Source: Macrostomum lignano | Taxonomy: Eukaryota | Length of the DNA: 64,000 bases | Direction: 5' to 3' | NCBI GenBank assembly: GCA_002269645.1 | Contig: NIVC01000800.1 | Span: 62,001-126,000 of the forward strand | Shown: positions 20,792-64,000 of the stretch, in pieces | Numbering within the stretch: the stretch's first letter is position 1 | Layout of the letters: each line of letters opens with the position of its first letter | Notes under the pieces: model-generated | The model's database searches: none | What the model was told of the DNA's origin: nothing | Seen by the model: only the letters and a program-made list of their open reading frames with translations | Made by a program: the position numbers and the translations under genes

Positions 20792-22004
<1,213 letters not shown>

Positions 22005-22304: not shown

Positions 22305-25418
<3,114 letters not shown>

Positions 25419-25686: not shown

Positions 25687-26177
<491 letters not shown>

Positions 26178-26178
<1 letters not shown>

Positions 26179-28546: not shown

Positions 28547-28999
28547 ACTAGTTGATCAAGAACACTCCTTTGCTAGAATGCAGCGGCCAGCGCCCTCCCA
28601 GTGTTGGAGGTGGCAACCAGTGGACTGAGCTAGCAGTTAAAACAAAACAGCTTTACTCGCTAGAGATCAATGCTTTTATTTGCTGAGTTGGCAAGCTCGG
28701 CTGAGGGGGTGTGAGTCGTCGAAGAGCGTTTCGGGACGGTACGCACATTGAGCACAGGGACAATGGCTTCACTTCAGAATTTGAATCGATGCCTTAAGGC
28801 GGAGGTTCCGACCTGGACGGAGCAGGAGGTGGCGCCACCACTTGCTGCTCACAGCCCGGTTTACGAGCCTCAGTGCTACGCTGGGAAACACCTGCTCCAA
28901 CTCTGCTAGCCACCAGGCCATTGCCCACGAAGTCACCCCAGCGAACTCTCTCCACCCCCCGCATGCGTTCGCGAGTCGCCATTGGAAGCGGAAGACGCT

Positions 29000-29012
29000 A
29001 TACTGCTATAAC
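29000..29012 (+). promoter_or_regulatory. Candidate TATA box of repeat-exon gene copy 1
   Basis: TATACTGCTATAA lies ~150 bp upstream of the ATG. Homology with copy 2 starts here. Confidence 0.45.
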
Positions 29013-29161
29013 TATGCTGCCGCCCCAGTCCGCGAGCTTCTCCAACTTTCCAACACACGCCCAGTTCGGAAACAGCTATAGAAAATATTGTAGCAGTTCG
29101 AGTTTTGTTGTTAAACAATCAACAACTGCAGGCTACTGTTTTGATTTGCTCAAGCAAGAGT

Positions 29162-32100
29162 ATGCTGCTGAAGGGCAGAGCTACTGCGGTGAGCATCTTT
29201 TTGCTGCTCGTTTTGCTTCTGGTTGGAACTCGCTGCCAAGCCAGACCAGTGCGAGGACCAGGTGAGTAGCACCTGATGTAGCAAACAGAGTAACAAATAT
29301 TGTGCAAAACATCATAGCAACTACTTGATTGCTTTGCACTTGAAGGACTTCCTTTGAAACCCGCAACTTTACAGAGTCTGAAGAGCACGAGGAATTTTAT
29401 CCAGAAGAGGAAGAAGAGGAGTTTTTTCCCGGTAAAAAAGGAGGAAGTGTCGTTTCAGAAGAATGTGAGTGGTTTTTCGACAGTCCAATAAAAATGAAAA
29501 CGCGTTTAATAACTGCATTCACAACTGCGTAATGCTTGAATCGCTTCAGTGCTGAAAAAGCTCCTGGCCGGCCGAGATGAAGTGTCGCGGTCGTCAAAGG
29601 ACATCCAGAAAGGTAAATCTGTAAAAGAGATTTAGCACATTAAACTATTCAATTATTCTACAAGCTTGGAGCACCATTTTCGATCTGCAGGAAGGCGCAA
29701 ATCCGATGGCAAAAACCCGAAGGTTGTGCCGCCCGCGAGGAAAAAGCGTAAGCCACAAATTCTGCATTTTCACTGTGAAATTCTTAGTAAAATTTGCTTT
29801 GTCTTTCAGTAGAGCGCAAAGTTCACAGCCTACCAAGAATTCACCCAAGCCGGAAAGTGGGCGGAAGCAGGAAGTCTGCGCCACCGGTGAGGAAAGGTAG
29901 GTCAGGAACTTTACCTGCATAATTTGGTTTTGCTCTTCTTGCCGTAAGACACGTTGGCGGAAAGAGTTCCCTACCAAAGAGTGAGTTTCAGATAACATCA
30001 GATAGCAAGCAAACATCAATCCAAATTGGCGGTTTCAGAGAAGAACCAAAAGAATCGTAGAATCGTTTTGGGAGGCTCCGAGAGCTCCCTGCCGCCTCAG
30101 TTTAGAAGTGAGTATCAGCGCCATGACTCACAATGGCGACATTTCTGACACACTAGCATGCAATTCATCAAGAAGTTTGACTGTTTCAGAGAAGAACAAG
30201 AAGAGGATGATTGTAGGCGGCTCCGAGAGCTCCCTGCCGCCTCAGTTTAGAAGTGAGTATCAGCGCCATGACTCACAATGGCGACATTTCTGACACACTA
30301 GCATGCAATTCATCAAGAAGTTTGACTGTTTCAGAGAAGAACAAGAAGAGGATGATTGTAGGCGGCTCCGAGAGCTCCCTGCCGCCTCAGTTTAGAAGTG
30401 AGTATCAGCGCCATGACTCACAATGGCGACATTTCTGACACACTTTAGCATGAAATTGATCAAGAAGTTTGACTGTTTCAGAGAAGAACAAGAAGAGGAT
30501 GATTGTAGGCGGCTCCGAGAGCTCCCTGCCGCCTCAGTTTAGAAGTGAGTATCAGCGCCATGACTCACAATGGCGACATTTCTGACACACTAGCATGCAA
30601 TTCATCAAGAAGTTTGACTGTTTCAGAGAAGAACAAGAAGAGGATGATTGTAGGCGGCTCCGAGAGCTCCCTGCCGCCTCAGTTTAGAAGTGAGTATCAG
30701 CGCCATGACTCACAATGGCGACATTTCTGACACACTAGCATGCAATTCATCAAGAAGTTTGACTGTTTCAGAGAAGAACAAGAAGAGGATGATTGTAGGC
30801 GGCTCCGAGAGCTCCCTGCCGCCTCAGTTTAGAAGTGAGTATCAGCGCCATGACTCACAATGGCGACATTTCTGACACACTAGCATGCAATTCATCAAGA
30901 AGTTTGACTGTTTCAGAGAAGAACAAGAAGAGGATGATTGTAGGCGGCTCCGAGAGCTCCCTGCCGCCTCAGTTTAGAAGTGAGTATCAGCGCCATGACT
31001 CACAATGGCGACATTTCTGACACACTAGCATGCAATTCATCAAGAAGTTTGACTGTTTCAGAGAAGAACAAGAAGAGGATGATTGTAGGCGGCTCCGAGA
31101 GCTCCCTACCGCCTCAGTTCAGAAGTGAGTATCAGCGCCATGACTCACAATGGCGACATTTCTGACACACTAGCATGCAATTCATCAAGAAGTTTGACTG
31201 TTTCAGAGAAGAACAAGAAGAGGATGATTGTAGGCGGCTCCGAGAGCTCCCTGCCGCCTCAGTTTAGAAGTGAGTATCAGCGCCATGACTCACAATGGCG
31301 ACATTTCTGACACACTAGCATGAAATTGATCAAGAAGTTTGACTGTTTCAGAGAAGAACAAGAAGAGGATGATTGTAGGCGGCTCCGAGAGCTCCCTGCC
31401 GCCTCAATTCAGAAGTGAGTATCAGCGCCATGACTAACAATGGCGACATTTCTGACACACTTTAGCATGAAATTGATCAAGAAGTTTGACTGTTTCAGAG
31501 AAGAACAAGAAGAGGATGATTGTAGGCGGCTCTGAGAGCTCCCTGCCGCCTCAATTCAGAAGTGAGTATCAGCGCCATGACTCACAATGGCGACATTTCT
31601 GACACACTAGCATGCAATTCATCAAGAAGTTTGACTGTTTCAGAGAAGAACAAGAAGAGGATGATTGTAGGCGGCTCCGAGAGCTCCCTACCGCCTCAGT
31701 TCAGAAGTGAGTATCAGCGCCATGACTCACAATGGCGACATTTCTGACACACTTTAGCATGAAATTGATCAAGAAGTTTGACTGTTTCAGAGAAGAACAA
31801 GAAGAGGATGATTGTAGGCGGCTCCGAGAGCTTTCTACCGCCTCAGTTTAGAAGTGAGTATCAGCGCCATGACTCACAATGGCGACATTTCTGACACACT
31901 TTAGCATGCAATTGTTCAAGAAGTTTGACTGTTTCAGAGAAGAACAAGAAGAGGATGATTGTAGGCGGCTCCGAGAGCTCCCTGCCGCCTCAGTTCAGAA
32001 GTGAGTATCAGCGCCATGACTCACAATGGCGACATTTCTGACACACTTTAGCATGCAATTCATCAAGAAGTTTGACTGTTTCAGAGAAGAACAAGAAGAG

Positions 32101-35100
32101 GATGATTGTAGGCGGCTCCGAGAGCTCCCTGCCGCCTCAGTTTAGAAGTGAGTATCAGCGCCATGACTTCTAAGCGTTTAAGAGTTACGCACGTTTTTAG
32201 CACACTGGACAGGGATTAAGGTAGTAGGCAGTAGCCAGGTGAGTGCGAAAAAAACTGGGAATCGACAAAAAGGACGCCGTAATCCCAGATGATGTCGAAG
32301 AAAAAAGGCAATATAATTCGTGAAACAAAATATGAAGCAAGGAGCGCTGATAGAGATTCAGTCGTCGAAGCTTGAGGCAGAAGTTTTGCCTTGACCTTAC
32401 ATCTCGAGACTCTGTTGTGCTCCAAAAAGTTTTCTTTGGTTTCTTGAACGGTGCATGAAGCGATTGACTGGGTGAATTGCCATTTTCTGCAATTCATGCA
32501 GCAGTAAACCCTTAAGAGCGTTGAGGACATTTTTATTGATGATGGATCCGTGGTACGTGCGTTTATCTGCTTGAAAACTGGAAAAAGTGATGTATTTTAG
32601 CATCAGTCTCACTTTAAGCAGTCCAAAACAGTAGCCTAAGTTAGTGACTCAAGAAAGGACTCAAGATGGAACTCAGGACTCAAGGAAGGCAAGGCAAGAC
32701 TCTCTAAGACAATGTCGAGAACCCCTGGGAGTGGTGTTGTTCCACAAATTCAACCTGGATGAGATGTCTGGGGGCTTCTTGTCCACTCGTCCGATCAGTG
32801 ATTGATTGGCCTTCGGTCTGGTCCGGAGCTTCACTTCGGGCTCCTTTATGTCGATGAAGTTGACATCCTTTATGATACCATAGCTCGAGAGTCATTATGA
32901 ATCGATCAGCTGATCAATACTGCAGGTTCTGTGTCAGAAGAGGAGCGATCCAGCAAACGCTTCCCTTTGTCCGGATACGCAAAGGCCTCCAAGACTCCCG
33001 GGTCCAGAGGTGACAAGGACAAAGAGTTTAAAAGTGCGTCATAATTTGTCATACCCTGATAATTATTGTAGGACAGAATTTTCGTAGTTGAAAAAACTCT
33101 GAAGAAAAATTCGAAAAAATCGATAAGCGATTTGGAATCAAAGTGACGGGCACCGGGAGCTCCCGACCGCCCCAGAATGGAAGTGAGTTGCGGTGGTCAA
33201 TCTGTCAATCAAAGAAGACATTTCCAGTATCCTTAGGTCTTCAACTGCTCTGCCTCGTACTCCAGTTGATTTAAGATTCGAGTCGAACATTCGGCAGTTT
33301 AACCATTGTTAACTTTCCAAAACCATTGGAAAAGTCTGGCTTGGACGTTAGGAAACAGAAAGTTTTACTGTTTCTTTTAGCGACCCTCGAAAGGAAGGCA
33401 AGAATTTATACCGTGGACGACATAAATACCTGCATAAACGTGGGCCACAAACACCCAGGGTGCGCAGATGTCCTCAGACAGCGAAAAATGTGGTGGCCGC
33501 TTGCACAATCGAATTCAGGGTCCTTAGTCCAAGTCTCAGGTGCTTCGTCTCTTCTAAAACAACCCAAAAAATTAAAATGCATTCAACTTTTCCAAGTGCA
33601 CCCAGCTGACACTGAAACAAATGCAACTAAAACACTGCTACGCTTTAGAGAAGAACAAGAAGATCTCCAAGGCTCCTCAGGTGATCGTGGGCGGCTCTGA
33701 GAGCTCCCTGCCGCCTCAGTTTAGAAGTGAGATCCCTTTAATACTGCATCAGTTGTTATGATTTCAAAGCCAATCAAGAGCATCTGTGAACAAATATGAG
33801 TCCGTTCATTCACTGCAGAGAAGCACCGCAAAGCCAAGAAGTCAGTTCCGAAGCCAGGCTCCTCGAAGGCCTCACTACCTCCCAAGAAACCCAAGAAGAT
33901 TAAGAGTGAGTCTGTTTCTCCATTTTGCCGATTTTAAACCCTTGAATCAAGCAGTGTCTCCTGCGGTTGCAGAAATCGTCAGGCACCTTGGAATCAAAGC
34001 TGCTGAGCGCAAAAGTGAGTCTAAATTCTTCTAATTTTCTTTCGTTTTCCGAAATGATCTCATGTTAGCATGCACAGGCGACGCCCCTTGCGCGTATGCG
34101 CTTGCAGAGCAGTCGAGAGGGGCAGGCAGCAGCAGCCTGAGGGGTCAGCGCAAGCGCTTGCAAGTCAGCGACGAGGCAATCAGTCAGAGTGACCAAGCGG
34201 GTCTGGCCGCTCCACAGTCGCTCGGTCGGCTGGTGCAGCAGGGCCAGGGCCAGAAGGACGGCCTCACCGCGGCCAAGGGCCCGTAGGCAGTCGCCCAGCA
34301 GCATTTGACGATGCCGGCGCAGGGTAGCGCTCACCAGCGCGGGCCATCAGAGCGTTGGTCGACATGCGCTCCAGATAGTGCACTCCAAGCGCGTAACGCA
34401 GCAGCGATCGGTAGAGCGCGTCCAGGGCTCGCGCTCGCATCTGCGTCAGCGGCACAGCCTCCATGCCGTACAGAAGGATCGGCTCTACGACCGCGTGGAA
34501 CAGGCACACCTTCAGGTCGTCTCTGGCAGCTGAAGTGAAGACGTTCATGAAGAAGGGAGCGCGCGTCGCGCCAGGCCTGGTTCCTCCTGTCGGAGACAAT
34601 GGCACCGGGTTTATCACCAGGGTGTCGAGGTACCGGAAGTCCTCGCACGTCGCGGTGCCGTCTCCTTTGGACAGCGTGAGATTTGGGGCGGTATTTGGGC
34701 CCTCGTGCAGCGCCTCCGTCTTGCGAGAATTCACCAGCAGCCCAAGACGGGCGCCCTCGTCGCCGAGTCTTGTGATAGTGCGCTGGGCAGCGGCTGGGTC
34801 GCGACAGAGCAGCGCGATTTCGTCAGCATATGCGAGAGCGGGAAGCAAAAGGAATCGAAGCAAAACGAGAGGGCGTCTGGACCTTCGGTGTAGAATCAGT
34901 AGCTGTCATCCTCGTGGAAGGACTGATGCAGCGCATAAGTCCAAAACTACGAGGAAGCGCAGCAGAACCAGCATGTCGCCCTGAAGGACGCCTGGGCTGA
35001 TGCCGAACTCTTCTTCTGGACCGCCGCCGCTTGACATGACAAAGGCACTGGAGTCAGGATAGAGATCTATCACTGCGTACGCGTAGCAGGTACGCCATAA

Positions 35101-38100
35101 TGAGATAGGAGCCACGCGATAGCTCTGTGGTGGATCCGCCCGGGCAGAAGCCACTTTGGAGGCTCAGCAGCAGTGGGTCGAGGCCGGGTTGGATGCCGTT
35201 GCGCAGAATTGCGTTCAGCAGCTATCTCGGCTGGTGGAGGCGCCTTTCTTTGAGATGGAGACAATATTGGAGGTCCGACATTGCTGAGGAGCTAAGGCGG
35301 CCTCGTTGCCTCCAAGGCTGCAGTGCTTGTTCAGCAGGCTGGTGATGATCGGGGTGAGCTCAGGCAGCTTCAGGACCCTGGGAGGGATGGCGTCCACCCC
35401 AGCGGCGGCATCAGCTCGCATGGTCATCAGTGCTCGGCCAACCTCGCCTGCAGTGGTGGGGCCGGTGTCGAAGGCGCCTGATTGGACTGAAGCGAAGTCT
35501 GGGATCGGCAGGAGAGGCACAGTTGAAGCGGGCGCGTTGAGCACCTCGCGGTAGTGGGTGGCCAGCCGGGCCTTCCGGTGCTCGGTGGAATCAGCACCGA
35601 CGATGGTGTCGGGCTTCGGCTTCCTGCCGGTCAGCTGGTTGATGGCCCTTCTGGAAGCGCTATGGCGGCCGTTGTCAGTGGCGAGTTGGGTTTTGCTCAC
35701 TGCCACTTCGATGAAGACTTCAGTCCGCTGGGCATAGATGCGCTGCAGCTCGTCCGTGGCAGCACTGGCCTGGGCGCTGTCATGGCCGTGGAGGGCAGCA
35801 GTGCTCTCCTTCCCTTGGAGACGATGAGACTGCGGTCCCACAGAGCCTTTGGATGGTTTTCCTGTCTCCGTGGGAGAAGCGCTGCAGCATCCTCGACGGC
35901 GTGATGGAAAGACTCGAAAGACTCGTTCAAAGAAATTTGGAAGCTTTCTGAGGCGCTTTCGCATGGTGCCATTGACAGCCATCAGATCTCTGGCCTAGAA
36001 AAAACTAGATAGGAAAGGTGAGTTGGCATTGGGGATGCCACAGCTGTTCTTCACCAGGCGGCCGTCGGCTGGAAATTGCGAGTTGAAATCCCCTGCACCA
36101 AACTGTCGCCGATGTTCTTGAACTGCCAGGATGGAGACGTTGAGGTCAGCGGCCAGCCTTGTCAGCTCCTGCAGTCTCCATGTCTGACTGAGAGCGCGGG
36201 CATTGAAGGTGGCGACCCGAAGCTGGTCTTGAAGATGCGGCCGACTTGTGCCCTTGTTGGCTCTGCTTGTCACTGATCTCAGCAATGTACAGTGTTGCAT
36301 TTGACTGAAAACACCAATAATTGTACTCCTTGAGGATAACAAGAAGATCTCCAAGGCTCCTCAGGTGGGCGGCTCCGTGAGCTCCCTGGCGCCTCAGTTT
36401 AGAAGTATAAGATCTGTTTAATACTGCATCAGTTGTTGTGATTTCCAAGCCAATCAAGAGCATCTGTAAACAAATATGAGTCCGGTCATTCACTGCAGAG
36501 AAGAAGCGCAAAGTCAAGAAGGCAGTTCCGAAGCCAGACTCCTCGAAGGCCTCACTACCTCCCAAGAAACCCAAGAAGATTAAGAGTGAGTCTGTTTCTC
36601 CATTTTGCCGATTTTAAACCCTTGAATCAAGCAGTGTCTCCTGTGGTTGCAGAAGTCGTCAGGCACCTTGGAATCAAAGCTGCTGGGCAAAGTGAGTTTA
36701 GAGTATTCTAACTACATGTACCTTCGCTGTCACCTTCGATCTCGTAGTAATATTTCTACTTTGTAACAGAGAAGGAATATTGATTAAGGTGTTTGACTGT
36801 TTCAGAGAATAACAAGAAGATCGCCAAGGCTCCTCAGGTGATCGTGGGCGGCTCCGAGAGCTCCCTGGCGCCTCAGTTCAGAAGTGAGATCCCTTTATAA
36901 TATTATATCAATTTTTTATTTCAAAGCCAATCAAGAGCATCTGGGAACAAATACGAGTATGAGTCCGGTCATTCACTGCAGAGAAGAACCGCAAAGCCAA
37001 GAAGTCAGTTCCGAAGCCAGGCTCCTCGAATGCCTCACTACCTCCCAGGAAACCCAAGAAGAATAAAAGTGAGTCTGTTTTCTGTTTTCGTTGGTGTCGA
37101 CGAGAAGCGACGAGACACCCTATGCAGGTCCTTTCCAGGGTCCTTCCCTATGCAGGGCGCCCGACATGAGCCTCGAGTGAAGAGGGGGCCTTCTTATAAT
37201 AAAGTGGCGCCCCTGATGAAAGATTCTGGCTGTGCGCCTTGGCACAAGTCTGACTGCTTCATCATGTTTATTGCCCCTCGATGCATTTTGACCCAAAGGA
37301 GATGTAGCTAGATACTTGAAGTATTAAGAAAAGTTCCAGTGCTGTGTTGATACAAAAGGGAATAATAGTAAATACTTGAGCTAGCTCAATGTAATTTGGC
37401 TATAACTTCTTCATGAAATTACAGAGCAACAAATACTGCTTTCATTTTTGCTGCCTCAACGAACACGGTGCTTTAAGTTGACAAAAACTCTCTCTTTTAT
37501 ACCCACAATCCTCTGGGATTCCAAGGGAGTGACCTTGGATGGGATTCTCTATGTTTGCATCGGTGTCACGTTAAAAGTTCAGAGAACCGCGCCGACTAAG
37601 CTCGGGAGTCGGCCGTCCAAGTGACTTTCGGCCTTCTTAATCCCACTAGTGAAAATCGTCACTTTTATCGGTTTTTTTATTTTTCAGAAAAGCAAAAGAA
37701 GAGGAAAATTTTATTCAGACACGTTCGCACCGGTGGCGATGAAAGCTTGACTTCAACTGGCTCTGGAAGTGAGTGCATGCCATCTATGCTCGTATCCTCC
37801 CACATGCGATCACTCTTTTTCGAAAATTTTATTTTTACGAATCGTTCGGTTTTTTAGCACCTCAAAAAGTAAATATTGGGAAGAAGAAAAGAATTCAAAA
37901 ACGCAAGGCCGGCGGAAGTGGCGTCAAAAAGACCGGCGGAAGTGGCGTCAAAAAGACCGGCGGAAGTGGTGTAAAAAAGGCCGGCGGAAGTGGCGTCAAG
38001 AAGGCCGGCGGAAGTGGCGTCAAGAAGGCCGGCGGAAGTGGCGTCAAAAAGGCCGGCGGAAGTGGCGTCAAAAAGACCGGCGGAAGTGGCGTCAAAAAGA

Positions 38101-38624
38101 CCGACGGAAGTGGCGTCAAGAAGGCCGGCGGAAGTGGCGTCAAAAAGGTTGGTGGAAGTGGCGTCAAAAAGGCCGGCGGAAGTGGCGTCAAAAAGGCCGG
38201 CGGAAGTGGCGTCAAAAAGACCGGCGGAAGTGGCGTCAAAACAGTTGGCGGAAGTGGCGTCAAAAAGGCCGGCGGAAGTGGCGTCAAAACAGTTGGCGGA
38301 AGTGGCGTCAAAAAGGCCGGCGGAAGTGGCGTCAAAACAGTTGGCGGAAGTGGCGTCAAAAAGGCCGGCGGAAGTGGCGTCAAAAAGGCCGGCGGAAGTG
38401 GCGTCAAAAAGGCCGGCGGAAGTGGCGTCAAAAAGGCCGGTGGAAGTGGCGTCAAAAAGGCCGGCGGAAGTGCCGTCAAAAAGGCCGGCGGAAGTGCCGT
38501 AAAAAATTCCAGTGGAAGTGGCGTCAAAAAGGCCGGCGGAAGTGGCGTCAAAAAGGCCGCCGGAAGTGGCGTTAAAACGGCCCCTCTGAAGGGACCCAGC
38601 AAGGGAAAGGCAAACCAGCCTTAA
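29162..38624 (+). CDS. Secreted multi-exon Lys-rich repeat precursor, copy 1: signal peptide, acidic pro-region, xGGS peptide modules, (KKAGGSGV)n tail
   Basis: Exons: 29162-29261 (MLLKGRATAVSIFLLLVLLLVGTRCQARPVRGP), 29375-29464 (acidic), 29550-29612, 29691-29747, 29810-29896, ~29949-29980, 30039-30107, 14 x 63 nt (30190...32147), ~33088-33182, 33649-33726, 33819-33905, 33955-34014, 36499-36585, 36635-36691, 36806-36883, 36982-37068, 37688-37768 and 37858-38624. All internal exons are phase 1/1 with GT-AG; two need a 1-nt correction. Confidence 0.78.
30108..32165 (+). repeat. 145/147-bp tandem intron-exon array (14 exons of 63 nt) within gene copy 1
   Basis: Unit: TTTGACTGTTTCAG | AGAAGAAC...TTTAGAA | GTGAGT. 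The exon reads (K)KNKKRMIVGGSESSLPPQFR. Confidence 0.93.
32170..33045 (-). mobile_element. Possible decayed DNA-transposon-derived insertion in an intron
   Basis: Unique sequence interrupts the exon series. Weak inverted ends (TTACGCACGTTTT / AAAAGTGCGTCA) and broken minus-strand ORF fragments; no family assigned. Confidence 0.25.
34050..36290 (-). mobile_element. Decayed APE-RT non-LTR retrotransposon (RTE-like) with internal deletions, in an intron
   Basis: APE start LRVATFNARAL...ILAVQEHR and AGDFNS. RT motifs GVLQGD, YADEIALL, LVNSRKTE, FRYL and ILLYGME are spread over several frames. Confidence 0.8.
37905..38575 (+). repeat. 24-bp coding repeat (AAAAAGGCCGGCGGAAGTGGCGTC)n encoding (KKAGGSGV)n in the last coding exon of copy 1
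   Basis: About 28 copies. The frame is fixed by the acceptor at 37857 and by the C-terminus LKGPSKGK..QP*, which is shared with copy 2. Confidence 0.88.
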
Positions 38625-38625
38625 G

Positions 38626-38718
38626 GTAGGTAGGCCGAAGGCATTACTTCCAAGGGTGTTGAACGCATTGTAAGCTGAGCAATGGCAAGCTGATCCAATT
38701 CCTAATCTTCTCTTTCAG
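38626..38718 (+). other. 3'-UTR intron starting 1 nt after the stop codon (copy 1)
   Basis: CCTTAAG|GTAGGT...CTAATCTTCTCTTTCAG|GTGCCGAC; the same arrangement occurs in copy 2 (59578-59760). Confidence 0.65.
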
Positions 38719-39043
38719 GTGCCGACTGTCGAAGTCAGAATTGCATTCTGCGAGGCTGATGATCCGAAACATGACCAGACAAAATATATTATTTTTTCTC
38801 GGTCCGGTCAAAGTGAACAAACATTTCCTTTCTCCCCGACAATTCACATCTAGTCGCTTCTATTTTGAAAGTGCTGTCATCCTAACTACCATAACGATGT
38901 TGAGCTGAAGAAAATAAAAGCCAGGATTTAATAATGAATTGTTTTGATTCCTAAACAGGCTGTGGTTATTCAAGCAAGTTTCAAAGAACCTAAATGAATT
39001 ATTTGCGTTATTTCAACTCTGGAAAATAACTCTGAACGATGAA

Positions 39044-42748: not shown

Positions 42749-47613
<4,865 letters not shown>

Positions 47614-49016
47614 TTACCGTCTTATCCCAGGATTGCTCCCAGGCGAGGCTCCGGCAGGCCCCCGGTCCACACTCTGCAAGATCAGGGGGCGGGAGGCCGG
47701 CTGTGGGCTTGGGACACAGGCGCCAGGTCGAGTTGACAGCCGACGCCCGAGCTCTCCCCCACAAGAGCGGCCCTCGAGAACCCGTGTGGTACCAGTTGCA
47801 ACTAAGGGCTGTCGATGGGTAGTTGGCGCTTAGCCAGCAGCCAACTACTTAGCAGCCACCTGCCCCGCAAAAAAGCAGCAGGGGGGATCCGTCCCCCACC
47901 AGCAGACCAAGACGAGGAAGCTAGCCGCTTCCACGCCAGGCCAGAACGAAAAGGAGGGGGAAGAGCCTCCTCGAAAAACGAAAAGCTGGCGGATGTCACA
48001 GAGTCCCTCGGTTTAAGTTGCCGTTTGCCCCCCACCCATGCTGTTAGAGTACGCTAGTCGGTTTGGTGACGATCTGAACGCCGCCGCCACGACGAGTGCG
48101 CTGAACTTGCCTACATTCGGCCGATCCAGCGGTGTCCAATACGAAAACAGTCTTGACGCCACTCTGTTTCCTGTCAACAAACTTGCAGGCAAGCACATTT
48201 CCAGAGCGTGCAATGGCAGAAGAAGTTGGCTGCAGATTTACAGCCTGCAGCAGGTTTGGGATGCCGCGGTTTTTGCGCACTGTGCCAGTGAGAAGAACAT
48301 TCCGTTGCAGCAGCCACGTAGCAAGTCTGTGCGAAGTGAACCAACTGTCTGTGAAAATATGGTAGCCTAGGTAAAGCAAATTGCGGCACAACTCAGCCAC
48401 AACTCTCTCACTCATGGACAAATTTTGACAGCCCAGTCCATCACCGAACAATTGGTTGGCTTCAGTTGATGTATGGATTTCAAAATTCCACAGGTAGGTC
48501 ATGTCGGACTCACAAAGGCAGTACATCTTGATTCCGTACTTACTGCTCTTCGTTGGGATGTACTGCTTGAACAACAGTCTTCCCTTGTACAGCACGAGAC
48601 TTTCGTCAATCGAGAGCCGCTGACGAGGCATAGTTGTTGCTGCACAGCTGCTTAGCCTGTTGCAGAAAAGGCTGCGTCTTAGCCAAGGGACCCCCGTGCA
48701 GAGCCTCAGTGCAATCGTAAAAGCGAAAACAGGACAAGATCTGCTTGAACCTGTCTCTAGGAAGAGAACAAGGCTCAGCAAGAAATGCACAGTGATAAGC
48801 CGGATCTTGCGACCAATAGCTCGATATTTCAGGCTTCTTGTCCAGTCCCATCAGCAAAACAATTCCGATCAATTTTCTTACTTCATTAACCGTGCAGTCC
48901 TTCCAGTTCAGCACAAAATTTGGGACTGCTCCACCGTCAAAGTTATCCTCATAGGTCTTCCAAACCTTTGCGTTTGTCCAGTTCTTGATGTTCTCCATCA
49001 ACCCGTCCGTCAAATA

Positions 49017-52169: not shown

Positions 52170-52860
52170 TTTTTAAATTGAATGTGCCAGCACCCCCATA
52201 GCACCCCCGTGCAGACGTTTTATTCCCCCCACAAATAGGGACATCAACTCGCCCCACTCGTATGGCTCTTCAGCTGAGGAAATAAGAAAGAAATCGGCTG
52301 GCTCGAGATCTCTCGAGTGCGGATCGTGAATTGACTCAAAGCGATATGGTTTAAAAACCATGTAAAAGGATTGCTCGACACTAACCTGATAGGCAAGTTC
52401 GCGTCCATCGCATTCAATAAAGGCGCAAAATACGTTGCAGAAATCAATTAACGCATCCATTGGAAATGACGCAGGGCGCATCGTAGTTGAAATTTGGTTT
52501 TTTTAGAGTTTGGAGTTGACGTGGCAATTCTCTCCTCCCATATTACTCCTCTCTCCAAGCCTTCCCGACATTGTTGCTTTACGAGCGTATAGCAAGGGTT
52601 GGCGTTCAATTGCCCAGACAGCAGACTATGCAAAACAATGAAACCTTCGAGGTCATTCTGTCTGGACAGCCAGCTACGAGCCATTTGCCAAGCGACTCAA
52701 GATTATTGTCGATAAATTTATACCATGCGACGACATACTAAAGTTAGAAAATTTTAAAATTTAACGTTTCAGCGTCTACTTAAGGAGTCTAGAAGGGTAA
52801 ATAATAAATAATAGTGTCTGCCCTCTGTCCGCCAGTCTGTTTGTGCTTCGCATTGGCAAA
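52170..52860 (-). mobile_element. Mariner-like transposase remnant, copy A
   Basis: HDPHSRDLEPADFF(L)FPQLK corresponds to the mariner HPPYSPDLAPSDFFLFPKLK motif. Broken frames; homologous to 61370-62230. Confidence 0.7.
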
Positions 52861-52939
52861 AATTACTGGAGAACATTCAGCAGTCTGCAACGCCCCCACA
52901 TATCTCGACTGCTTCTTCCGATGTGATGTAATCTGATGT

Positions 52940-55082
52940 GACTGGCTTTGAATCTAATGAGACTGACTATCAATCTAATGAGACTGGCTATCAATCTAAT
53001 GAGACTGGCTATCAATCTAATGAGACTGGCTATCAATCTAATGAGACTGAGACTGGCTATCAATCTAATGAGACTGGCTATCAATCTAATGAGACTGAGA
53101 CTGGCTATCAATCTAATGAGACTGGCTATCAATCTAATGAGACTGGCTATCAATCTAATGAGACTGGCTATCAATCTAATGAGACTGGCTATCAATCTAA
53201 TGAGACTGGCTATCAATCTAATGAGACTGGCTATCAATCTAATGAGACTGGCTATCAATCTAATGAGACTGGCTATCAATCTAATGAGACTGGCTACCAA
53301 TCTAATGAGACTGGCTATCAATCTAATGAGACTGGCTATCAATCTAATGAGACTGGCTATCAATCTAATGAGACTGGCTATCAATCTAATGAGACTGGCT
53401 ATCAATCTAATGAGACTGGCTATCAATCTAATGAGACTGGCTATCAATCTAATGAGACTGGCTATCAATCTAATGAGACTGGCTATCAATCTAATGAGAC
53501 TGGCTATCAATCTAATGAGACTGGCTATCAATCTAATGAGACTGGCTATCAATCTAATGAGACTGGCTATCAATCTAATGAGACTGGCTATCAATCTAAT
53601 GAGACTGGCTATCAATCTAATGAGACTGGCTATCAATCTAATGAGACTGGCTATCAAACTAATGTAATGAGACTGGCTATCAATCTTATCTAATGAAACT
53701 GGCTATCAAACTAATGTAATGAGACTGGCTATCAATCTTATCTCATGAGACTGGCTATCAATCTAATGAGACTGGCTATCAATCTAATGAGACTGGCTAT
53801 CAATCTAATGAGACTGGCTATCAATCTAATGAGACTGGCTATCAATCTAATGAGACTGGCTATCAATCTAATGAGACTGGCTATCAATCTAATGAGACTG
53901 GCTATCAATCTAATGAGACTGGCTATCAATCTAATGAGACTGGCTATCAATCTAATGAGACTGGCTATCAAACTAATGTAATGAGACTGGCTATCAATCT
54001 TATCTAATGAAACTGGCTATCAAACTAATGTAATGAGACTGGCTATCAATCTTATCTAATGAAACTGGCTATCAAACTAATGTAATGAGACTGGCTATCA
54101 ATCTTATCTCATGAGACTGGCTATCAATCTAATGAGACTGGCTATCAATCTAATGAGACTGGCTATCAATCTAATGAGACTGGCTATCAATCTAATGAGA
54201 CTGGCTATCAATCTAATGAGACTGGCTATGAATCTAATGAGACTGGCTATCAATCTAATGAGACTGGCTATCAATCTAATGAGACTGGCTATCAATCTAA
54301 TGAGACTGACTATCAATCTAATGAGACTGGCTATCAATCTAATGAGACTGGCTATCAATCTAATGAGACTGACTATCAATCTAATGAGACTGGCTATCAA
54401 TCTAATGAGACTGGCTATCAATCTAATGAGACTAGCTATCAATCCTATCTAATGAGACTGGCTATCAATCTTATCTAATGAGACTGGCTATCAATCTTAT
54501 CTAATAAGACTGGCTATCAATCTTATCTAATGAGACTGGCTATCAATCTAATGAGACTGGCTATCAATCTAATGAGACTGGCTATCAATCTTATCTAATG
54601 AGACTGGCTATCAATCTTATCTAATAAGACTGGCTATCAATCTTATCTAATGAGACTGGCTATCAATCTAATGAGACTGGCTATCAATCTAATGAGACTG
54701 GCTATCAATCTTATCTAATGAGACTGGCTATCAATCTTATCTAATGAGACTGGCTATCAATCTTATGTAATGAGACTGGCTATCAATCTAATGAGACTGG
54801 CTATCAATCTAATGAGACTGGCTATCAATCTAATGAGACTGAGACTGGCTATCAATCTAATGAGACTGGCTATCAATCTAATGAGACTGGCTATCAATCT
54901 AATGAGACTGGCTATCAATCTAATGAGACTGGCTATCAATCTAATGAGACTGGCTATCAATCTAATGAGACTGGCTATCAATCTAATGAGACTGGCTATC
55001 AATCTAATGAGACTGGCTATCAATCTAATGAGACTGGCTATCAATCTAATGAGACTGGCTATCAATCTAATGAGACTGGCTA
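52940..55082. repeat. 21-bp minisatellite (GAGACTGGCTATCAATCTAAT)n
   Basis: About 100 copies, with occasional 26/27-bp variants; source of the SNETGYQ/LIASLIR ORFs. Confidence 0.97.
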
Positions 55083-55189
55083 TTCGAATAATTATCGAGC
55101 GCAACTCGTCTGGCCCTGCCAGTTGGTGGGCACGCATGTCGTAGTGCACAGTGGGCAGCACAGGGATTGGCTCCAGGGTCAGGTCCACT

Positions 55190-55348: not shown

Positions 55349-58300
55349 ATGCCGCTGAAGGGCAGAGCAGCTGCAGTGAGCAGCTTGTTGCTGCTCGTTT
55401 TGCTTCTGGTTGGCACTCGCTGCCAAGCCAGACCAGTTCCAGGATCAGGTGAGTATAAGCAGGCTTGGCTTGACTGACTACTCTATGTAGCAAACAGAGT
55501 AACTAATATTGTGCTTGCATAGCAACACTTGATTACCGTACACTCGAAGGACCTCCTTTGAAACCCGCAACATTACAGAGTCTGATGATGACCACGAGGA
55601 ACTTTTTCCAGAAGAGGAAGAAGAGGAAGAAGAAGAAGAGCCTTCTACAGGTGAAGAAGGTGACGAGAGGCATGGAGGAGGAAGTGTCGTTACAGCAAGA
55701 AGTGAGTAACGGGTTTTCCACTGCTTAGCTCGTACTATTAAAGATGAAACTGGGTACTCTGTCCTAATAACAGCGGAATAATTGAAACGCTTCAGTTCTG
55801 CAACAGCTCAAAACCAGCCGAGATGAAACCTCAAAAGACTTCCTAAAAGGTAAATGCAACAAATATGTCACAAAAAACAACCATTCAACACGCTCGAAGC
55901 GCCATTTATAGGCTGAAAGAAAAGCGCAAAACTACATTCAAAACGCAAAGGTTATGTAAGGCCACTAATCTAATGGGACATGGCGACATTTCTGACACAC
56001 TTTAGCATGAAATTGATCAAGAAGTTTGACTGTTTCAGAGAAGAACAAGAAGAGGATGATTGTAGGCGGCTCCGAGAGCTCCCTGCCGCCTCAGTTTAGA
56101 AGTGAGTATCAGCGCCATGACTCACAATGGCGACATTTCTGACACACTTTAGCATGAAATTGATCAAGAAGTTTGACTGTTTCAGAGAAGAACAAGAAGA
56201 GGATGATTGTAGGCGGCTCCGAGAGCTCCCTGCCGCCTCAGTTCAGAAGTGAGTATCAGCGCCATGACTCACAATGGCGACATTTCTGACACACTTTAGC
56301 ATGAAATTGATCAAGAAGTTTGACTGTTTCAGAGAAGAACAAGAAGAGGATGATTGTAGGCGGCTCCGAGAGCTCCCTGCCGCCTCAGTTTAGAAGTGAG
56401 TATCAGCGCCACGACTCACAATGGCGACATTTCTGACACACTTTAGCATGCAATTGTTCAAGAAGTTTGACTGTTTCAGAGAAGAACAAGAAGAGGATGA
56501 TTGTAGGCGGCTCCGAGAGCTCCCTGCCGCCTCAGTTCAGAAGTGAGTATCAGCGCCATGACTCACAATGGCGACATTTCTGACACACTTTAGCATGAAA
56601 TTGATCAAGAAGTTTGACTGTTTCAGAGAAGAACAAGAAGAGGATGATTGTAGGCGGCTCCGAGAGCTCCCTGCCGCCTCAGTTCAGAAGTGAGTATCAG
56701 CGCCACGACTCACAATGGCGACATTTCTGACACACTTTAGCATGAAATTGATCAAGAAGTTTGACTGTTTCAGAGAAGAACAAGAAGAGGATGATTGTAG
56801 GCGGCTCCGAGAGCTCCCTACCGCCTCAGTTTAGAAGTGAGTATCAGCGCCATGACTCACAATGGCGACATTTCTGACACACTTTAGCATGAAATTGATT
56901 AAGAAGTTTGACTGTTTCAGAGAAGAACAAGAAGAGGATGATTGTAGGCGGCTCCGAGAGCTCCCTGCCGCCTCAGTTTAGAAGTGAGTATCAGCGCCAT
57001 GACTCACAATGGCGACATTTCTGACACACTTTAGCATGAAATTATCAAGAAGTTTGACTGTTTCAGAGAAGAACAAGAAGAGGATGATTGTAGGCGGCTC
57101 CGAGAGCTCCCTGCCGCCTCAGTTCAGAAGTGAGTATCAGCGCCATGACTCACAATGGCGACATTTCTGACACACTTTAGCATGAAATTGATCAAGAAGT
57201 TTGACTGTTTCAGAGAAGAACAAGAGGATGATTGTAGGCGGCTCCGAGAGCTCCCTACCGCCTCAGTTTAGAAGTGAGTATCAGCGCCATGACTCACAAT
57301 GGCGACATTTCTGACACACTTTAGCATGAAATTGATCAACAAGTTTGACTGTTTCAGAGAAGAACAAGAAGAGGATGATTGTAGGCGGCTCCGAGAGCTC
57401 CCTGCCGCCTCAGTTTAGAAGTGAGTATCAGCGCCATGACTCACAATGGCGACATTTCTGACACATAGCATGCAATTCATCAACAAGTTTGACTGTTTCA
57501 GAGAAGAACAAGAAGAGGATGATTGTAGGCGGCTCCGAGAGCTCCCTACCGCCTCAGTTTAGAAGTGAGTATCAGCGCCATGACTCACAATGGCGACATT
57601 TCTGACACACTTTAGCATGCAATTCATCAACAAGTTTGACTGTTTCAGAGAAGAACAAGAAGAGGATGATTGTAGGCGGCTCCGAGAGCTCCCTGCCGCC
57701 TCAGTTTAGAAGTGAGTATCAGCGCCATGACTCACAATGGCGACATTTCTGACACACTAGCATGCAATTCATCAACAAGTTTGACTGTTTCAGAGAAGAA
57801 CAAGAAGAGGATGATTGTAGGCGGCTCCGAGAGCTCCCTGCCACCTCAGTTTAGAAGTGAGTATCAGCGCCATGACTCACAATGGCGACATTTCTGACAC
57901 ACTAGCATGCAATTCATCAACAAGTTTGACTGTTTCAGAGAAGAACAAGAAGAGGATGATTGTAGGCGGCTCCGAGAGCTCCCTACCGCCTCAGTTTAGA
58001 AGTGAGTATCAGCGCCATGACTCACAATGGCGACATTTCTGACACACTAGCATGCAATTCATCAAGAAGTTTGACTGTTTCAGAGAAGAACAAGAAGAGG
58101 ATGATTGTAGGCGGCTCCGAGAGCTCCCTGCCGCCTCAGTTTAGAAGTGAGTATCAGCGCCATGACTCACAATGGCGACATTTCTGACACACTAGCATGC
58201 AATTCATCAACAAGTTTGACTGTTTCAGAGAAGAACAAGAAGAGGATGATTGTAGGCGGCTCCGAGAGCTCCCTGCCGCCTCAGTTTAGAAGTGAGTATC

Positions 58301-59576
58301 AGCGCCATGACTCACAATGGCGACATTTCTGACACACTAGCATGCAATTCATCAACAAGTTTGACTGTTTCAGAGAAGAACAAGAAGAGGATGATTGTAG
58401 GCGGCTCCGAGAGCTCCCTGCCGCCTCAGTTTAGAAGTGAGTATCAGCGCCATGACTCACAATGGCGACATTTCTGACACACTTTAGCATGCAATTCATC
58501 AACAAGTTTGACTGTTTCAGAGAAGAACAAGAAGAGGATGATTGTAGGCGGCTCCGAGAGCTCCCTGCCGCCTCAGTTTAGAAGTGAGTATCAGCGCCAT
58601 GACTCACAATGGCGACATTTCTGACACAATAGCATGCAATTCATCAACAAGTTTGACTGTTTCAGAGAAGAACAAGAAGAGGATGATTGTAGGCGGCTCC
58701 GAGAGCTCCCTGCCGCCTCAGTTTAGAAGTGAGTATCAGCGCCATGACTCACAATGGCGACATTTCTGACACACTAGCATGCAATTCATCAACAAGTTTG
58801 ACTGTTTCAGAGAAGAACAAGAAGAGGATGATTGTAGGCGGCTCCGAGAGCTCCCTGCCGCCTCAGTTTAGAAGTGAGTATCAGCGCCATGACTCACAAT
58901 GGCGACATTTCTGACACACTAGCATGCAATTCATCAACAAGTTTGACTGTTTCAGAGAAGAACAAGAAGAGGATGATTGTAGGCGGCTCCGAGAGCTCCC
59001 TACCGCCTCAGTTTAGAAGTGAGTATCAGCGCCATGACTCACAATGGCGACATTTCTGACACACTTTAGCATGCAATTCATCAACAAGTTTGACTGTTTC
59101 AGAGAAGAACAAGAAGAGGATGATTGTAGGCGGCTCCGAGAGCTCCCTACCGCCTCAGTTTAGAAGTGAGTATCAGCGCCATGACTCACAATGGCGACAT
59201 TTCTGACACACTTTAGCATGCAATTCATCAACAAGTTTGACTGTTTCAGAGAAGAACAAGAAGAGGATGATTGTAGGCGGCTCCGAGAGCTCCCTGCCGC
59301 CTCAGTTTAGAAGTGAGTATCAGCGCCATGACTCACAATGGCGACATTTCTGACACACTAGCATGCAATTCATCAACAAGTTTGACTGTTTCAGAGAAGA
59401 ACAAGAAGAGGATGATTGTAGGCGGCTCCGAGAGAAACGAATCTAATAAGAAGAAAAAAGTTCAAGTACACAAGGCCGGCGGAAATGGCGAGAAAAAGTC
59501 CGGCGGGAGAGCTGCCAAAAAGCAGCATCTGAAGGGACCCAGCAAAGGAAAGCCGCAGGGCAAGCATCAGCCTTAA
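55349..59576 (+). CDS. Secreted multi-exon Lys-rich repeat precursor, copy 2 (paralogue of 29162-38624)
   Basis: Exons: 55349-55448 (MPLKGRAAAVSSLLLLVLLLVGTRCQARPVPGS; 100 nt as in copy 1), 55579-55701 (poly-Glu), 55796-55849, ~55912-55955 (needs +1 nt), 23 repeat exons (56039...59312) and a fused terminal exon 59395-59576 ending LKGPSKGKPQGKHQP*. Confidence 0.8.
55978..59432 (+). repeat. 145/147-bp tandem intron-exon array (23 complete exons plus 1 partial) within gene copy 2
   Basis: Same unit as 30108-32165. Confidence 0.93.
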
Positions 59577-61064
59577 GGTAGGTAGGCCCTATGGAATTAC
59601 ATTTATGGTGAGTGTTGAAAATATTTTGAATCTGATTGCAAAGCGAAACTACTAACTGATGAAGTGCCCGGAGAGACAGGTCATAACAAGTGACTAGTTT
59701 ATTTATTAGCATTTTAGAAATACTTCGTGCATGCTGACCCTTTCTACTCTTTTCTTTCAGGTGCCGACGGTTAAAGTCAGAATTTAATTCTGCGAGGCTG
59801 ATGATACGAAACATGACCAGACAAACTATGACAATTATTTTCCTTGATTCGGTAAAAGTGAACAAACGTTTCTTTTTTCTCCCCGATAATTCGCATCCAG
59901 TCGCTTTTTGGAAGCGCGCAGCCTTCAACGTAACTATTATGCGATGGAGGAAGGAAATAAATTAAGCCAGAACTCAATAACGAACCCTTTCGATTCCTAA
60001 AGTGTGGCAGTGGTTATTCAAGCAAATTTCCAAGAAAATATTAATTGTTTGTGCTATTTTATTTCAGGAAACGAAACTAATCGGATTTCTTAATTTACAA
60101 TTTCCAACTCTTGACAAAGCTTTACGCCAAGAGTACATGTATTTCTGAAGGGCTTTTCATGTATATCAGTACTCTGTGTATGTTCTGTTTCAGATTTAGC
60201 GATTTCTGCATTAATGAGATGAAGGATTTTAATGAATTGTTGTTAGTTTGGCTAGCCTTTAACCTGCCTAGCTGTCTGAGGAACCTGTCACAAGCGTACC
60301 GATCGAGGCTATGCGTGTGCTGTTTGTTGTTGTTAAACGGGGTGCTAGCGGGGATCAGCCCAAGTGACGTTGGCTCCACCGCTTGAACAGACAACCTCAA
60401 GATTGAATCCCTTCAGTGGGGATCGGAGCCGTTGAAAGATTTGGAAACTCCTGCAGGATTTGTTGTCCTCACTGCAAAGGCTCATAATTACGAATATTTT
60501 CACGGCTTGGCTCCGCTAATCCAAGCTCAGTGGACCCGCAATCTCGGCCAGACACAAGTGAAATTTAACTATCCATCAGGCAGGGTCGAACGTGAGCGGA
60601 CGACACAAAGAGCGAGATCAATGGCGCCATCCGCGGGCACTTGGTCCAGCTCCCGCAAACAGGTGCATGAGAGCCTTGCCTACACATGTGCTTTACGGCA
60701 ATATATCACATGTACGAGTATTTACATGCATATTATTACATGCAAGGGCAACTATGAGGATATAGTTAACCCACAGACTGCAGCCTGAATTGCCGCACTC
60801 ATCTCGCAAAAGTACACGGGGTGTCTGGAGTTCTGACACTTAAACCCAGAGATAAAAAGGGAGATTTGGTGTCATTTTGAAGCGGCGCATTCTTTATTAT
60901 TATTAGAGGCAGGGGGGTTGTGTGCACCCTGGCGCACTTTAAGCGACATAGGCACACAACCGGCGAGAGGCATTACTGCCCATTCCGCCGACTCCCCTGA
61001 GCAGGCACACAAGCGCGCGGATACGTACGCAGGCACACACTCACACAGGAGTGTACAGCGGCCC

Positions 61065-61369: not shown

Positions 61370-62230
61370 AAGTGATGGTTTGCCCCTCATGGATAAACCT
61401 TCTTAACATAGTCGTCACATGTAGCAACTCGCTTCTTCCACCGCTTGAGCATGGATGGCGTCAGTCGCATCGAAATAGCTTTGGCTTGAAAGACCTTGGG
61501 AAAGAATTCATCGGACCTTGTCTTAAAACGGCTCTTCAGCTGCAGAAAAATAAAGAAATCGGCAGGCTCCAGATCCGTTGAGTGTAGATTTTGAAAATCA
61601 TCTACTAATTTGCTTTTTGGTTTGATAGCGGCCTACGTTGGTTCACAGACAGTTTCGATCTAGTGCAGTAAATCATGCCGTTTACCTGATGGGCAAGTTC
61701 ACGTTCATCTCGTAGTCGTATTACATCAAGGTGCAAAATGCGCTGCACAATGACGCATCCATCGGAAACGACACTAGACACATTGGAAATGAAGTTTGTA
61801 AGTTGTTTTTTTTAAGCAAACCCCTCACCGTTTTTGAGCACAATTCTTCGCAAAGCAACCGTTTAAGCTATTTCCGGCTCAGCTGGACCAAGAGTGGCAA
61901 TTCTATTCTCCCATAACTCCTTTTTTCCCAGCCTTCTCCGACTGTAGCTTAGCCAGGGATAGCATTCAATTGCCAGCCAGCAGACCATGCAAAACAATGA
62001 AACCTTCGAGGTCATTCTGTCTGGCAAGCTGCGAGCTACTCCGAGCGACTCTTCGAGGTCATTCTGTCTGGAAAGTAATAACATGCGAGGACATACTGGA
62101 GTTTGAAAAAATTAATTTCTTAACTTTCAGCGTCTACTAAAGGAGCTTAGAATAAGTAAACAAGAGCGTTTGTCTTCTTTCTGCCCCTGCCTCTCGGTCT
62201 GCCAGTCTGTCTTCTGTATGCTTCGCATTG
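61370..62230 (-). mobile_element. Mariner-like transposase remnant, copy B
   Basis: HSTDLEPADFFIFLQLK...LKRWKKRVATCDDYVKK (mariner C-terminus); DNA homologous to 52200-52860. Confidence 0.72.
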
Positions 62231-63919: not shown

Positions 63920-64000
63920 GAGACTGGCTATGAATCTAATGAGACTGGCTATCAATCTAATGAGACTGGCTATCAATCTAATGAGACTGGCTATCAATCT
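63920..64000. repeat. Second locus of the 21-bp minisatellite, in an SDHA intron, cut by the window end
   Basis: Same unit as 52940-55082, including the rare CTATGAATCT variant. Confidence 0.93.

Follow-up and report, generated by a model that had tools for sequence, protein, structure and literature searches.

Diverged tandem paralogues in Macrostomum lignano carry nearly identical exon-intron arrays that probably evolve in concert

We describe a 64,000-nucleotide stretch of Macrostomum lignano DNA (from contig NIVC01000800.1; hereafter the window) that contains two genes on the same strand, A and B, each with an internal array of short exon-intron cassettes. Genes A and B are probably old tandem paralogues whose arrays evolve in concert, through non-reciprocal exchange between the two arrays and unequal exchange within each of them. 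Between the two loci, the repeats differ far less than the surrounding unique sequence does, as is expected of concerted evolution; the mechanism is of a known kind, and the case is clear, not unprecedented.

Tandem Repeats Finder (TRF) reports a 145-nucleotide (nt) array of 14.4 copies in gene A (30074-32168, 97% matches) and a 147-nt array of 23.7 copies in gene B (55980-59434, 98% matches), 25.9 kb apart. Each unit consists of one 63-nt exon and one 82-nt or 84-nt intron (GTGAGT...TTTCAG), so that the arrays are built of iterated exon-intron cassettes in which the introns, too, are homogenized. There are 14 complete units in A and 23 in B, which agrees with the 37 counted in the initial annotation, and the two length variants that it had seen in both arrays are indeed common to them (145 nt in eight A and nine B units; 147 nt in five A and 11 B units). 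The junctions of the homogenized tracts lie in different registers of the unit, running from exon position 33 to intron position 21 in A and from intron position 27 to exon position 40 in B. The genes and tracts are as follows.

29162..38624, + strand: gene A, the paralogue, of about 855 amino acids, with the frame open for the exon set suggested by UniProt model P0004
30071..32168, + strand: array A, homogenized tract, starting 33 nt into a divergent first exon and ending 21 nt into the last intron
55349..59576, + strand: gene B, 27 exons and 634 amino acids, with the spliced translation open from the ATG at 55349 to the TAA at 59574-59576
55980..59434, + strand: array B, homogenized tract, starting 58 nt inside intron 3 and ending 40 nt into the 24th exon

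The span first assigned to gene B, 55349-59576, proved to run exactly from ATG to TAA of this 27-exon reading frame. The exons are, in order, a signal peptide exon, an acidic exon, a linker, 23 array exons and a fused terminal exon, and all introns are GT..AG (25 GTGAGT donors and 24 TTTCAG acceptors on a splice-site check). The 23 complete array exons (56039-59312; 22 of 63 nt and one of 60 nt, with introns of 82 or 84 nt) all encode KKNKKRMIVGGSESSLPPQFR, except that B09 is missing one Lys codon. Because every array intron is in phase 1, giving phase 1-1 exons, the frame is kept with any number of units. The parts of gene B outside the array compare with gene A as listed below, in 5' to 3' order, with the two homology blocks last.

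Upstream region: 76% identity between A and B
55349..55448, + strand: gene B exon 1, signal-peptide-like (MPLKGRAAAVSSLLLLVLLLVGTRCQA followed by RPVPGS); 90% identity with gene A exon 1 (29162-29261)
Intron 1: 85% identity
55579..55701, + strand: gene B exon 2, strongly acidic (ESDDDHEELFPEEEEEEEEEEPSTGEEGDE...); 90 nt align with gene A exon 2 at 82% identity, indels accounting for 33 nt
Intron 2: 70% identity
55796..55849, + strand: gene B exon 3, a short linker (ILQQLKTSRDETSKDFLK); 74% identity and one 9-nt indel relative to gene A exon 3
Start of intron 3: 59% identity
59395..59576, + strand: gene B last exon, a truncated array exon joined in frame at 59434/59435 to a Lys-rich tail
3' untranslated region (UTR): 73% identity
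55188..55627, + strand: 5' homology block, matching gene A 28998-29420 at 80% (BLAST)
59472..60071, + strand: 3' homology block, matching gene A 38529-39025 at 74-77%, with a conserved intron right after the stop codon

Identity between A and B in the flanks is 59-90% (Jukes-Cantor distance 0.11-0.58 overall, 0.17-0.58 in introns and UTRs) with indels in every part, and homology outside the arrays is limited to the two blocks. The tail of gene B, in a last exon whose product reads ...MIVGGSE, RNESNKKKKVQVHKAGGNGEKK...KGKHQP and stop, is homologous to the terminal exon of gene A (74%, 38529-38663 versus 59472-59619). The signal, acidic and linker exons had been described as clearly diverged, with indels, and this holds: exons 1-3 are at 74-90% identity, with 33 nt of indels in exon 2 and a 9-nt indel in exon 3, and the two peptides quoted as differing are encoded by exon 3, which reads LKKLLAGRDEVSRSSKDIQK in gene A and LQQLKTSRDETSKDFLK in gene B. 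The contrast with the arrays is large. Distances between units were calculated for 13 A and 23 B units (36 in all, the divergent first unit A01 being left out), and the mean p-distance between arrays is 0.022 for whole units, 0.021 for exons and 0.023 for introns, compared with 0.020 within A and 0.019 within B. Net divergence between the arrays is therefore only 0.002, against a synonymous divergence (dS) of 0.23 in the unique exons 1-3, a comparison that the initial annotation had proposed as a check. Not one fixed difference separates the arrays; divergence equal to that of the flanks would have produced about 35-40 over 145 nt.

The variation that does exist is largely shared. Six polymorphisms segregate in both arrays (CTG/CTA for Leu, TTT/TTC for Phe, a TT indel and three intron substitutions), all at intermediate frequency in each, and the TT indel underlies the difference between 145-nt and 147-nt units. 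Private sites number five in A and ten alignment columns (about eight events) in B. Most pairs of shared sites violate the four-gamete condition, some of them only 8-14 nt apart, indicating that the units are mosaics, and a rare haplotype, TTTAGCATGCAATTGTTC, occurs once in each array (A13 and B03). The neighbour-joining tree of all 37 units, likewise suggested beforehand, interleaves the two loci, with eight locus changes where the minimum is one and the random expectation 11.5 (P = 0.023). The earlier proposal that interlocus conversion or transfer is more recent than the gene duplication is thus borne out by the lack of fixed differences, the shared polymorphisms and the interleaved tree. 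That the units are almost identical, introns included, is true on average and less so unit by unit: the sole pair identical across loci is A03 and B01, and an intron variant private to B, ATCAACAAG, is present in 14 of the 23 B units (B09-B23 except B14) and absent from A. The slight locus structure on the tree results from local expansions within arrays, namely five identical units in the 5' half of A and six identical units with the private C variant in the 3' half of B, where diversity (B10-B23) falls to 0.006. Colinearity of several units between the arrays was not above that of permuted unit orders (P = 0.24-0.99), and a block transfer between the arrays was rejected on this ground.

Selection acts on the same units. 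In the array exons synonymous diversity (piS) is 0.076 and nonsynonymous diversity (piN) 0.0011, a piN/piS ratio of 0.015, and translations are identical in 35 of 36 units, the exceptions being a Ser-to-Phe change in one A unit and the one-codon deletion in B. This shows strong purifying selection on the 21-residue unit, with amino-acid variants being removed. The suggestion that exchange keeps the peptide uniform across genes is accordingly correct as regards homogenization and incomplete as regards cause, because at this ratio uniformity is not merely a by-product of homogenization. The unique exons behave otherwise: nonsynonymous divergence (dN) is 0.25 and dN/dS about 1.1, a value compatible with rapid evolution of pro-regions as well as with a relaxation of constraint. 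The array exons also vary more at synonymous sites than the array introns do (five of 13.3 sites segregating, 0.076, versus eight of 82, 0.023; Fisher p = 0.015); this may reflect constraint on the short array introns or, given how few sites are involved, chance.

The process that we favor would run as follows. A break inside one array would be repaired by copying the other array (ectopic, non-reciprocal gene conversion) or, alternatively, units of its own array taken out of register (unequal sister-chromatid exchange), and new variants would thereby spread or be erased both within and between arrays. Beyond the array edges exchange would cease, since flanks at 59-90% identity and interrupted by indels no longer provide long identical stretches for recombination; a sharp edge is what homology-dependent repair predicts once flanks are at about 60-85% identity with indels. 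The flanks would then go on diverging while the arrays are held at about 2% diversity, and purifying selection on the 21-residue unit would clear amino-acid variants, so that the surviving exon variation is nearly all synonymous. Read in this way, the locus is a compact example of two forces acting jointly, interlocus exchange on cassettes and purifying selection on the unit, with the flanking exons free to evolve, and the copy number and sequence of arrays at paralogous loci should not be treated as independent.

Several points weigh against this reading. The comparison rests on one genome and one assembly, which do not allow repeated gene conversion to be distinguished from a single transfer; species-specific homogenization, the classical proof of concerted evolution, would need orthologous arrays from another Macrostomum species or strain. 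The locus structure is weak but significant (net divergence, permutation p = 0.025; tree, p = 0.023), which implies that exchange is too infrequent to make the arrays panmictic. The databases searched contain no B-type protein, so gene B may not be expressed, and this stands alongside the dN/dS of about 1.1 in its unique exons; conversion from A could by itself account for the intact array exons of gene B. Lastly, an 8-nt direct repeat around array B, AATCTAAT, is more readily explained by a single transfer of the insertion type than by conversion between pre-existing arrays.

Such a one-off transfer is the strongest competitor, though an unlikely one. Gene B, either arrayless or carrying some other array, would have acquired a block of units copied from gene A or from a different member of the family, through one insertion or template switch at the start of its terminal exon, followed by local expansion and reshuffling with no ongoing exchange. 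The direct repeat on which the case turns, together with the satellite discussed below, is placed as follows.

55967..55974, + strand: upstream copy of AATCTAAT, 5 nt (13 nt start to start) before array B
59440..59447, + strand: downstream copy of AATCTAAT, its first base 6 nt past the end of array B
52930..55084, + strand: 21-nt satellite, AATCTAATGAGACTGGCTATC, about 100 copies, ending some 100 nt before the A/B homology

Outside the satellite these are the only two plus-strand occurrences of AATCTAAT in the window, so the pair looks like a target-site-type duplication. The edges of array B are, moreover, free of relic or diverged units, whereas array A has such units on both sides, and the 3' half of array B is a young local expansion. 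Yet the two copies agree over 8 nt only and differ in four of the next five, although the arrays are 98% identical; the ends of the insert have no terminal inverted repeats; and the 5' junction lies in the intron that supplies the acceptor of the first array exon, as expected of an array formed in situ. The six shared polymorphisms occur in different combinations at the two loci and in no colinear block, which means that either many units were transferred and then much reshuffled or exchange was repeated. The bracketing by AATCTAAT was found post hoc and could be a target-site-type duplication or a coincidence. An insertion of array B of the transposon type was rejected, given the lack of terminal inverted repeats and a direct repeat of just 8 nt.

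A more specific form of the transfer, which we regard as improbable, makes the cassette array a transferable module: a block would have left a family member, as an excised circle or by template switching, and entered the start of the gene B terminal exon with AATCTAAT as an 8-nt target-site duplication. The downstream copy lies in sequence homologous to the start of the gene A terminal exon. If the idea were true, a single insertion of the module would have converted a gene for a short, secreted, Lys-rich protein to one with 23 repeat copies. The extended AATCTAAT sites match the start of the satellite monomer, AATCTAATGAGAC, at 12 of 13 positions (upstream) and 11 of 12 (downstream), scores reached by 0.2% and 0.6% of null windows, respectively, and the junction may have seeded the neighboring satellite, whose monomer opens with the same 13 nt. 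The satellite resumes at 63920 and continues to the end of the window at 64000, and in both places it is preceded by a segment of about 270 nt (52521-52794 versus 61894-62152, 76% similar). No third copy of the gene was found in the window, near the end of which only the satellite and this segment recur; a third copy may lie just past it.

An assembly artefact, one array having been filled in or polished with the other's reads or A and B being mis-joined haplotypes, is very improbable. Near-identical tandem arrays are prone to assembly error, and the singleton 1-nt deletions in B07 and B10 resemble errors of long reads. At 2.1 and 3.5 kb, however, the arrays are short, and they do not agree in the number of units, the order in which variants occur or the register of their junctions; a private substitution marks 14 B units and only one pair of units is identical. 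The two loci are therefore in all likelihood real, and misassembly by copy and paste or by collapse is unlikely. As alleles the genes would be too diverged (flanks at 59-90% identity, with different exon content), and A-like alleles or homeologues are deposited separately in UniProt at about 95% identity (P0001 and P0007). The remaining alternative, that no exchange took place and the arrays were preserved by selection alone or the whole gene was duplicated recently with fast, positively selected unique exons, could draw on the low piN/piS and on the dN/dS of about 1.1 but is hardly credible, since array introns are as alike as array exons (0.023 versus 0.021), which excludes selection alone, and since divergence reaches 15-41% in the introns of the flanks, in the upstream region and in the 3' UTR, as much as in the flank exons with their dS of 0.23, which excludes a recent duplication.

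Gene A shares the plan of its first three exons with gene B and adds two basic linker exons, so that its order is signal, acidic, three linker exons, 15 array exons, variant exons and a terminal exon. The array exons consist of a divergent first exon (30039-30107, KNQKNRRIVLGGSESSLPPQFR) and 14 standard 63-nt exons up to 32147. Diverged array-like sequence lies on both sides of the array:

29956..29986, + strand: relic array-like unit upstream of array A, GGCGGAAAGAGTTCCCTACCAAAGA running into GTGAGT
33144-33182, + strand: diverged array-like exon downstream of array A (...GSSRPPQNG)
33649-33726, + strand: diverged array-like exon downstream of array A (KNKKISKAPQVIVGGSESSLPPQFR)
36332-36404, + strand: further diverged array-like copy
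36806-36883, + strand: further diverged array-like copy
37858..38624, + strand: gene A terminal exon; a 24-nt coding repeat (KKAGGSGV) is iterated 28 times at 37905-38582

The relic unit is unused in the UniProt models, P0001 and P0006 splicing past it. The diverged exons are accompanied by Lys/Pro-rich exons, and the region contains a three-fold local duplication (33648-34034, 36332-36711 and 36801-37080). Between copies of this triplicated block, within an intron of gene A, sits a G+C-rich reverse-transcriptase fragment on the minus strand (34264-35982; element region 34100-36270), part of which (35291-35551) UniProt model P0003 takes as coding. The KKAGGSGV repeat is not common to both paralogues, gene B having only about two degenerate copies.

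A protein search with the spliced product of gene B matched only M. lignano entries, and the many satellites, the spliceosomal introns and a G+C content of about 47% give the window a eukaryotic character. Models P0005 and P0006, members of the 90% clusters returned by the protein search with the gene B product, are identical to the 5' part of gene A, translated 5' UTR included; they identify the source of the window as M. lignano and confirm the frame and splicing of the array exons independently (...VRKEKNQKNRRIVLGGSESSLPPQFRKKNKKRMIVGGSESSLPPQF). They differ from each other by exactly the first divergent array exon (30039-30107), which fits exon skipping, phase 1-1 exons permitting it without a change of frame. 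The downstream exons of gene A are matched by P0003, P0004 and P0008, of which P0003 matches 33821-33904 and 35291-35551 at 100%. Genes of this kind are easily fragmented in annotation, the UniProt models of gene A being partial, and the automatic names attached to them (KI67, H15, bindin) are misleading.

A word-indexed protein search with the gene B product gave no relatives beyond M. lignano, and phmmer with P0001 over 1.8 billion representatives gave M. lignano alone apart from one weak match in Symbiodinium natans (CAE7229251.1; P0009/P0010; E = 4e-6). The repeats of the latter, MVIGGDESSLPPEYRHG, resemble the flatworm unit MIVGGSESSLPPQFRKK, but a true relationship was rejected, the match probably being a convergent low-complexity similarity inflated by repetition. 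No Pfam domain scored above the cut-off, the motif SLPPQF and six UniProt accessions were absent from papers in a literature search, and the literature on M. lignano neuropeptides or Lys-rich secreted repeats yielded nothing specific to this family. Judged by these searches, the gene family is apparently uncharacterized and restricted to Macrostomum.

Both genes are predicted to encode a secreted, cysteine-free, very basic repeat protein (isoelectric point, pI, about 11; the mature gene B protein has a pI of 11.2 and no Cys, Tyr or Trp). The signal peptide of gene B, recognized by inspection, reads MPLKGR, AAAVSSLLLLVLLLVG and TRCQA, with RP after the predicted cut, and has the n/h/c layout with small residues at -3/-1. 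B contains 23 copies and A 14 copies of the sequence MIVGGSESSLPPQF flanked by KKR and RKK, and these dibasic boundaries are candidate convertase sites. The label of precursor given by the initial annotation is reasonable for the protein layout (signal peptide, acidic region and identical copies ending in KR, as in a multi-copy secretory peptide precursor), but the unit has no amidation signal (no Gly before the basic site), and no homology to a described peptide family was found in Pfam or in the two database searches. A polyprotein cleaved at its KR sites to release about 23 MIVGGSESSLPPQF peptides is quite possible, and so is an unprocessed polycationic gland or secretory product; the two options are about equally likely and neither is by itself probable. 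The purely basic spacers (RKKNKKR), and the recurrence of a GS..SLPP motif in other Lys-rich exons of gene A, together with the missing amidation signal, look more like a secreted structural polycation, and gene A, ending in 28 KKAGGSGV repeats, is more like such a product (gland, coat or adhesive-type). RNA interference, in situ hybridization and transgenesis are routine in M. lignano, so the function of the family is directly testable.

Similar arrangements are known elsewhere. Polyubiquitin genes consist of head-to-tail coding repeats, identical in protein and homogenized at synonymous sites within and between loci, with a polyprotein as product; their repeats are intronless, universally conserved and cleaved by known enzymes, whereas the flatworm unit is apparently lineage-restricted. 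Multi-copy precursors (of the FMRFamide type, Xenopus caerulein, insect apidaecin) combine a signal peptide, an acidic pro-region and identical copies with basic residues (KR), and Xenopus caerulein genes have one peptide per small exon, much as the flatworm copies lie on separate small symmetric exons; the flatworm differs in that its spacers are purely basic (RKKNKKR) rather than acidic and in having no amidation glycine. In the mammalian KRTAP1 genes coding regions evolve in concert between diverging flanks, which has been ascribed to short-tract gene conversion plus selection (Zhou et al., 10.1101/282418). There, as here, tandem paralogues have one internal concerted segment, normally diverging flanks and an abrupt transition; in KRTAP1, however, the homogenized segment is the whole single-exon coding region, whereas in the flatworm genes it is a set of internal exon-plus-intron cassettes that excludes the signal, acidic and tail exons. 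In the spider silk genes Nephila Flag and Argiope MaSp2, iterated introns are near-identical within a gene (Hayashi and Lewis 2000, as cited in PMC3563967). The likeness is an intron inside the repeat unit and a secreted, repetitive, low-complexity product; the silk modules are much larger and their homogenization is described within one gene, whereas in the flatworm it extends over two loci that lie 26 kb from each other. The silks and the flatworm unit, a single 21-residue basic motif, are unrelated in sequence.

Elsewhere in the window, cadherin-domain open frames are found on the plus strand (1575-8257: 1575-2846, 3069-3851 and 7568-8257), with a (GAGAGTGAGA)n array at 4993-5918 among them, and EGF and calcium-binding EGF domains on the minus strand at 18724-19794; these frames are exons of neighboring adhesion-type genes. 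Between genes A and B, the minus strand carries a retroelement (42749-45653; RVT_1, with RNase H matched weakly) and a fragment of a piggyBac-like transposase (48044-48790; DDE_Tnp_1_7). Very long simple repeats lie at 20792-22004 ((GACA) x303), 23655-25080 (a 19-nt unit x75) and 25687-26178 ((ATCT) x123).

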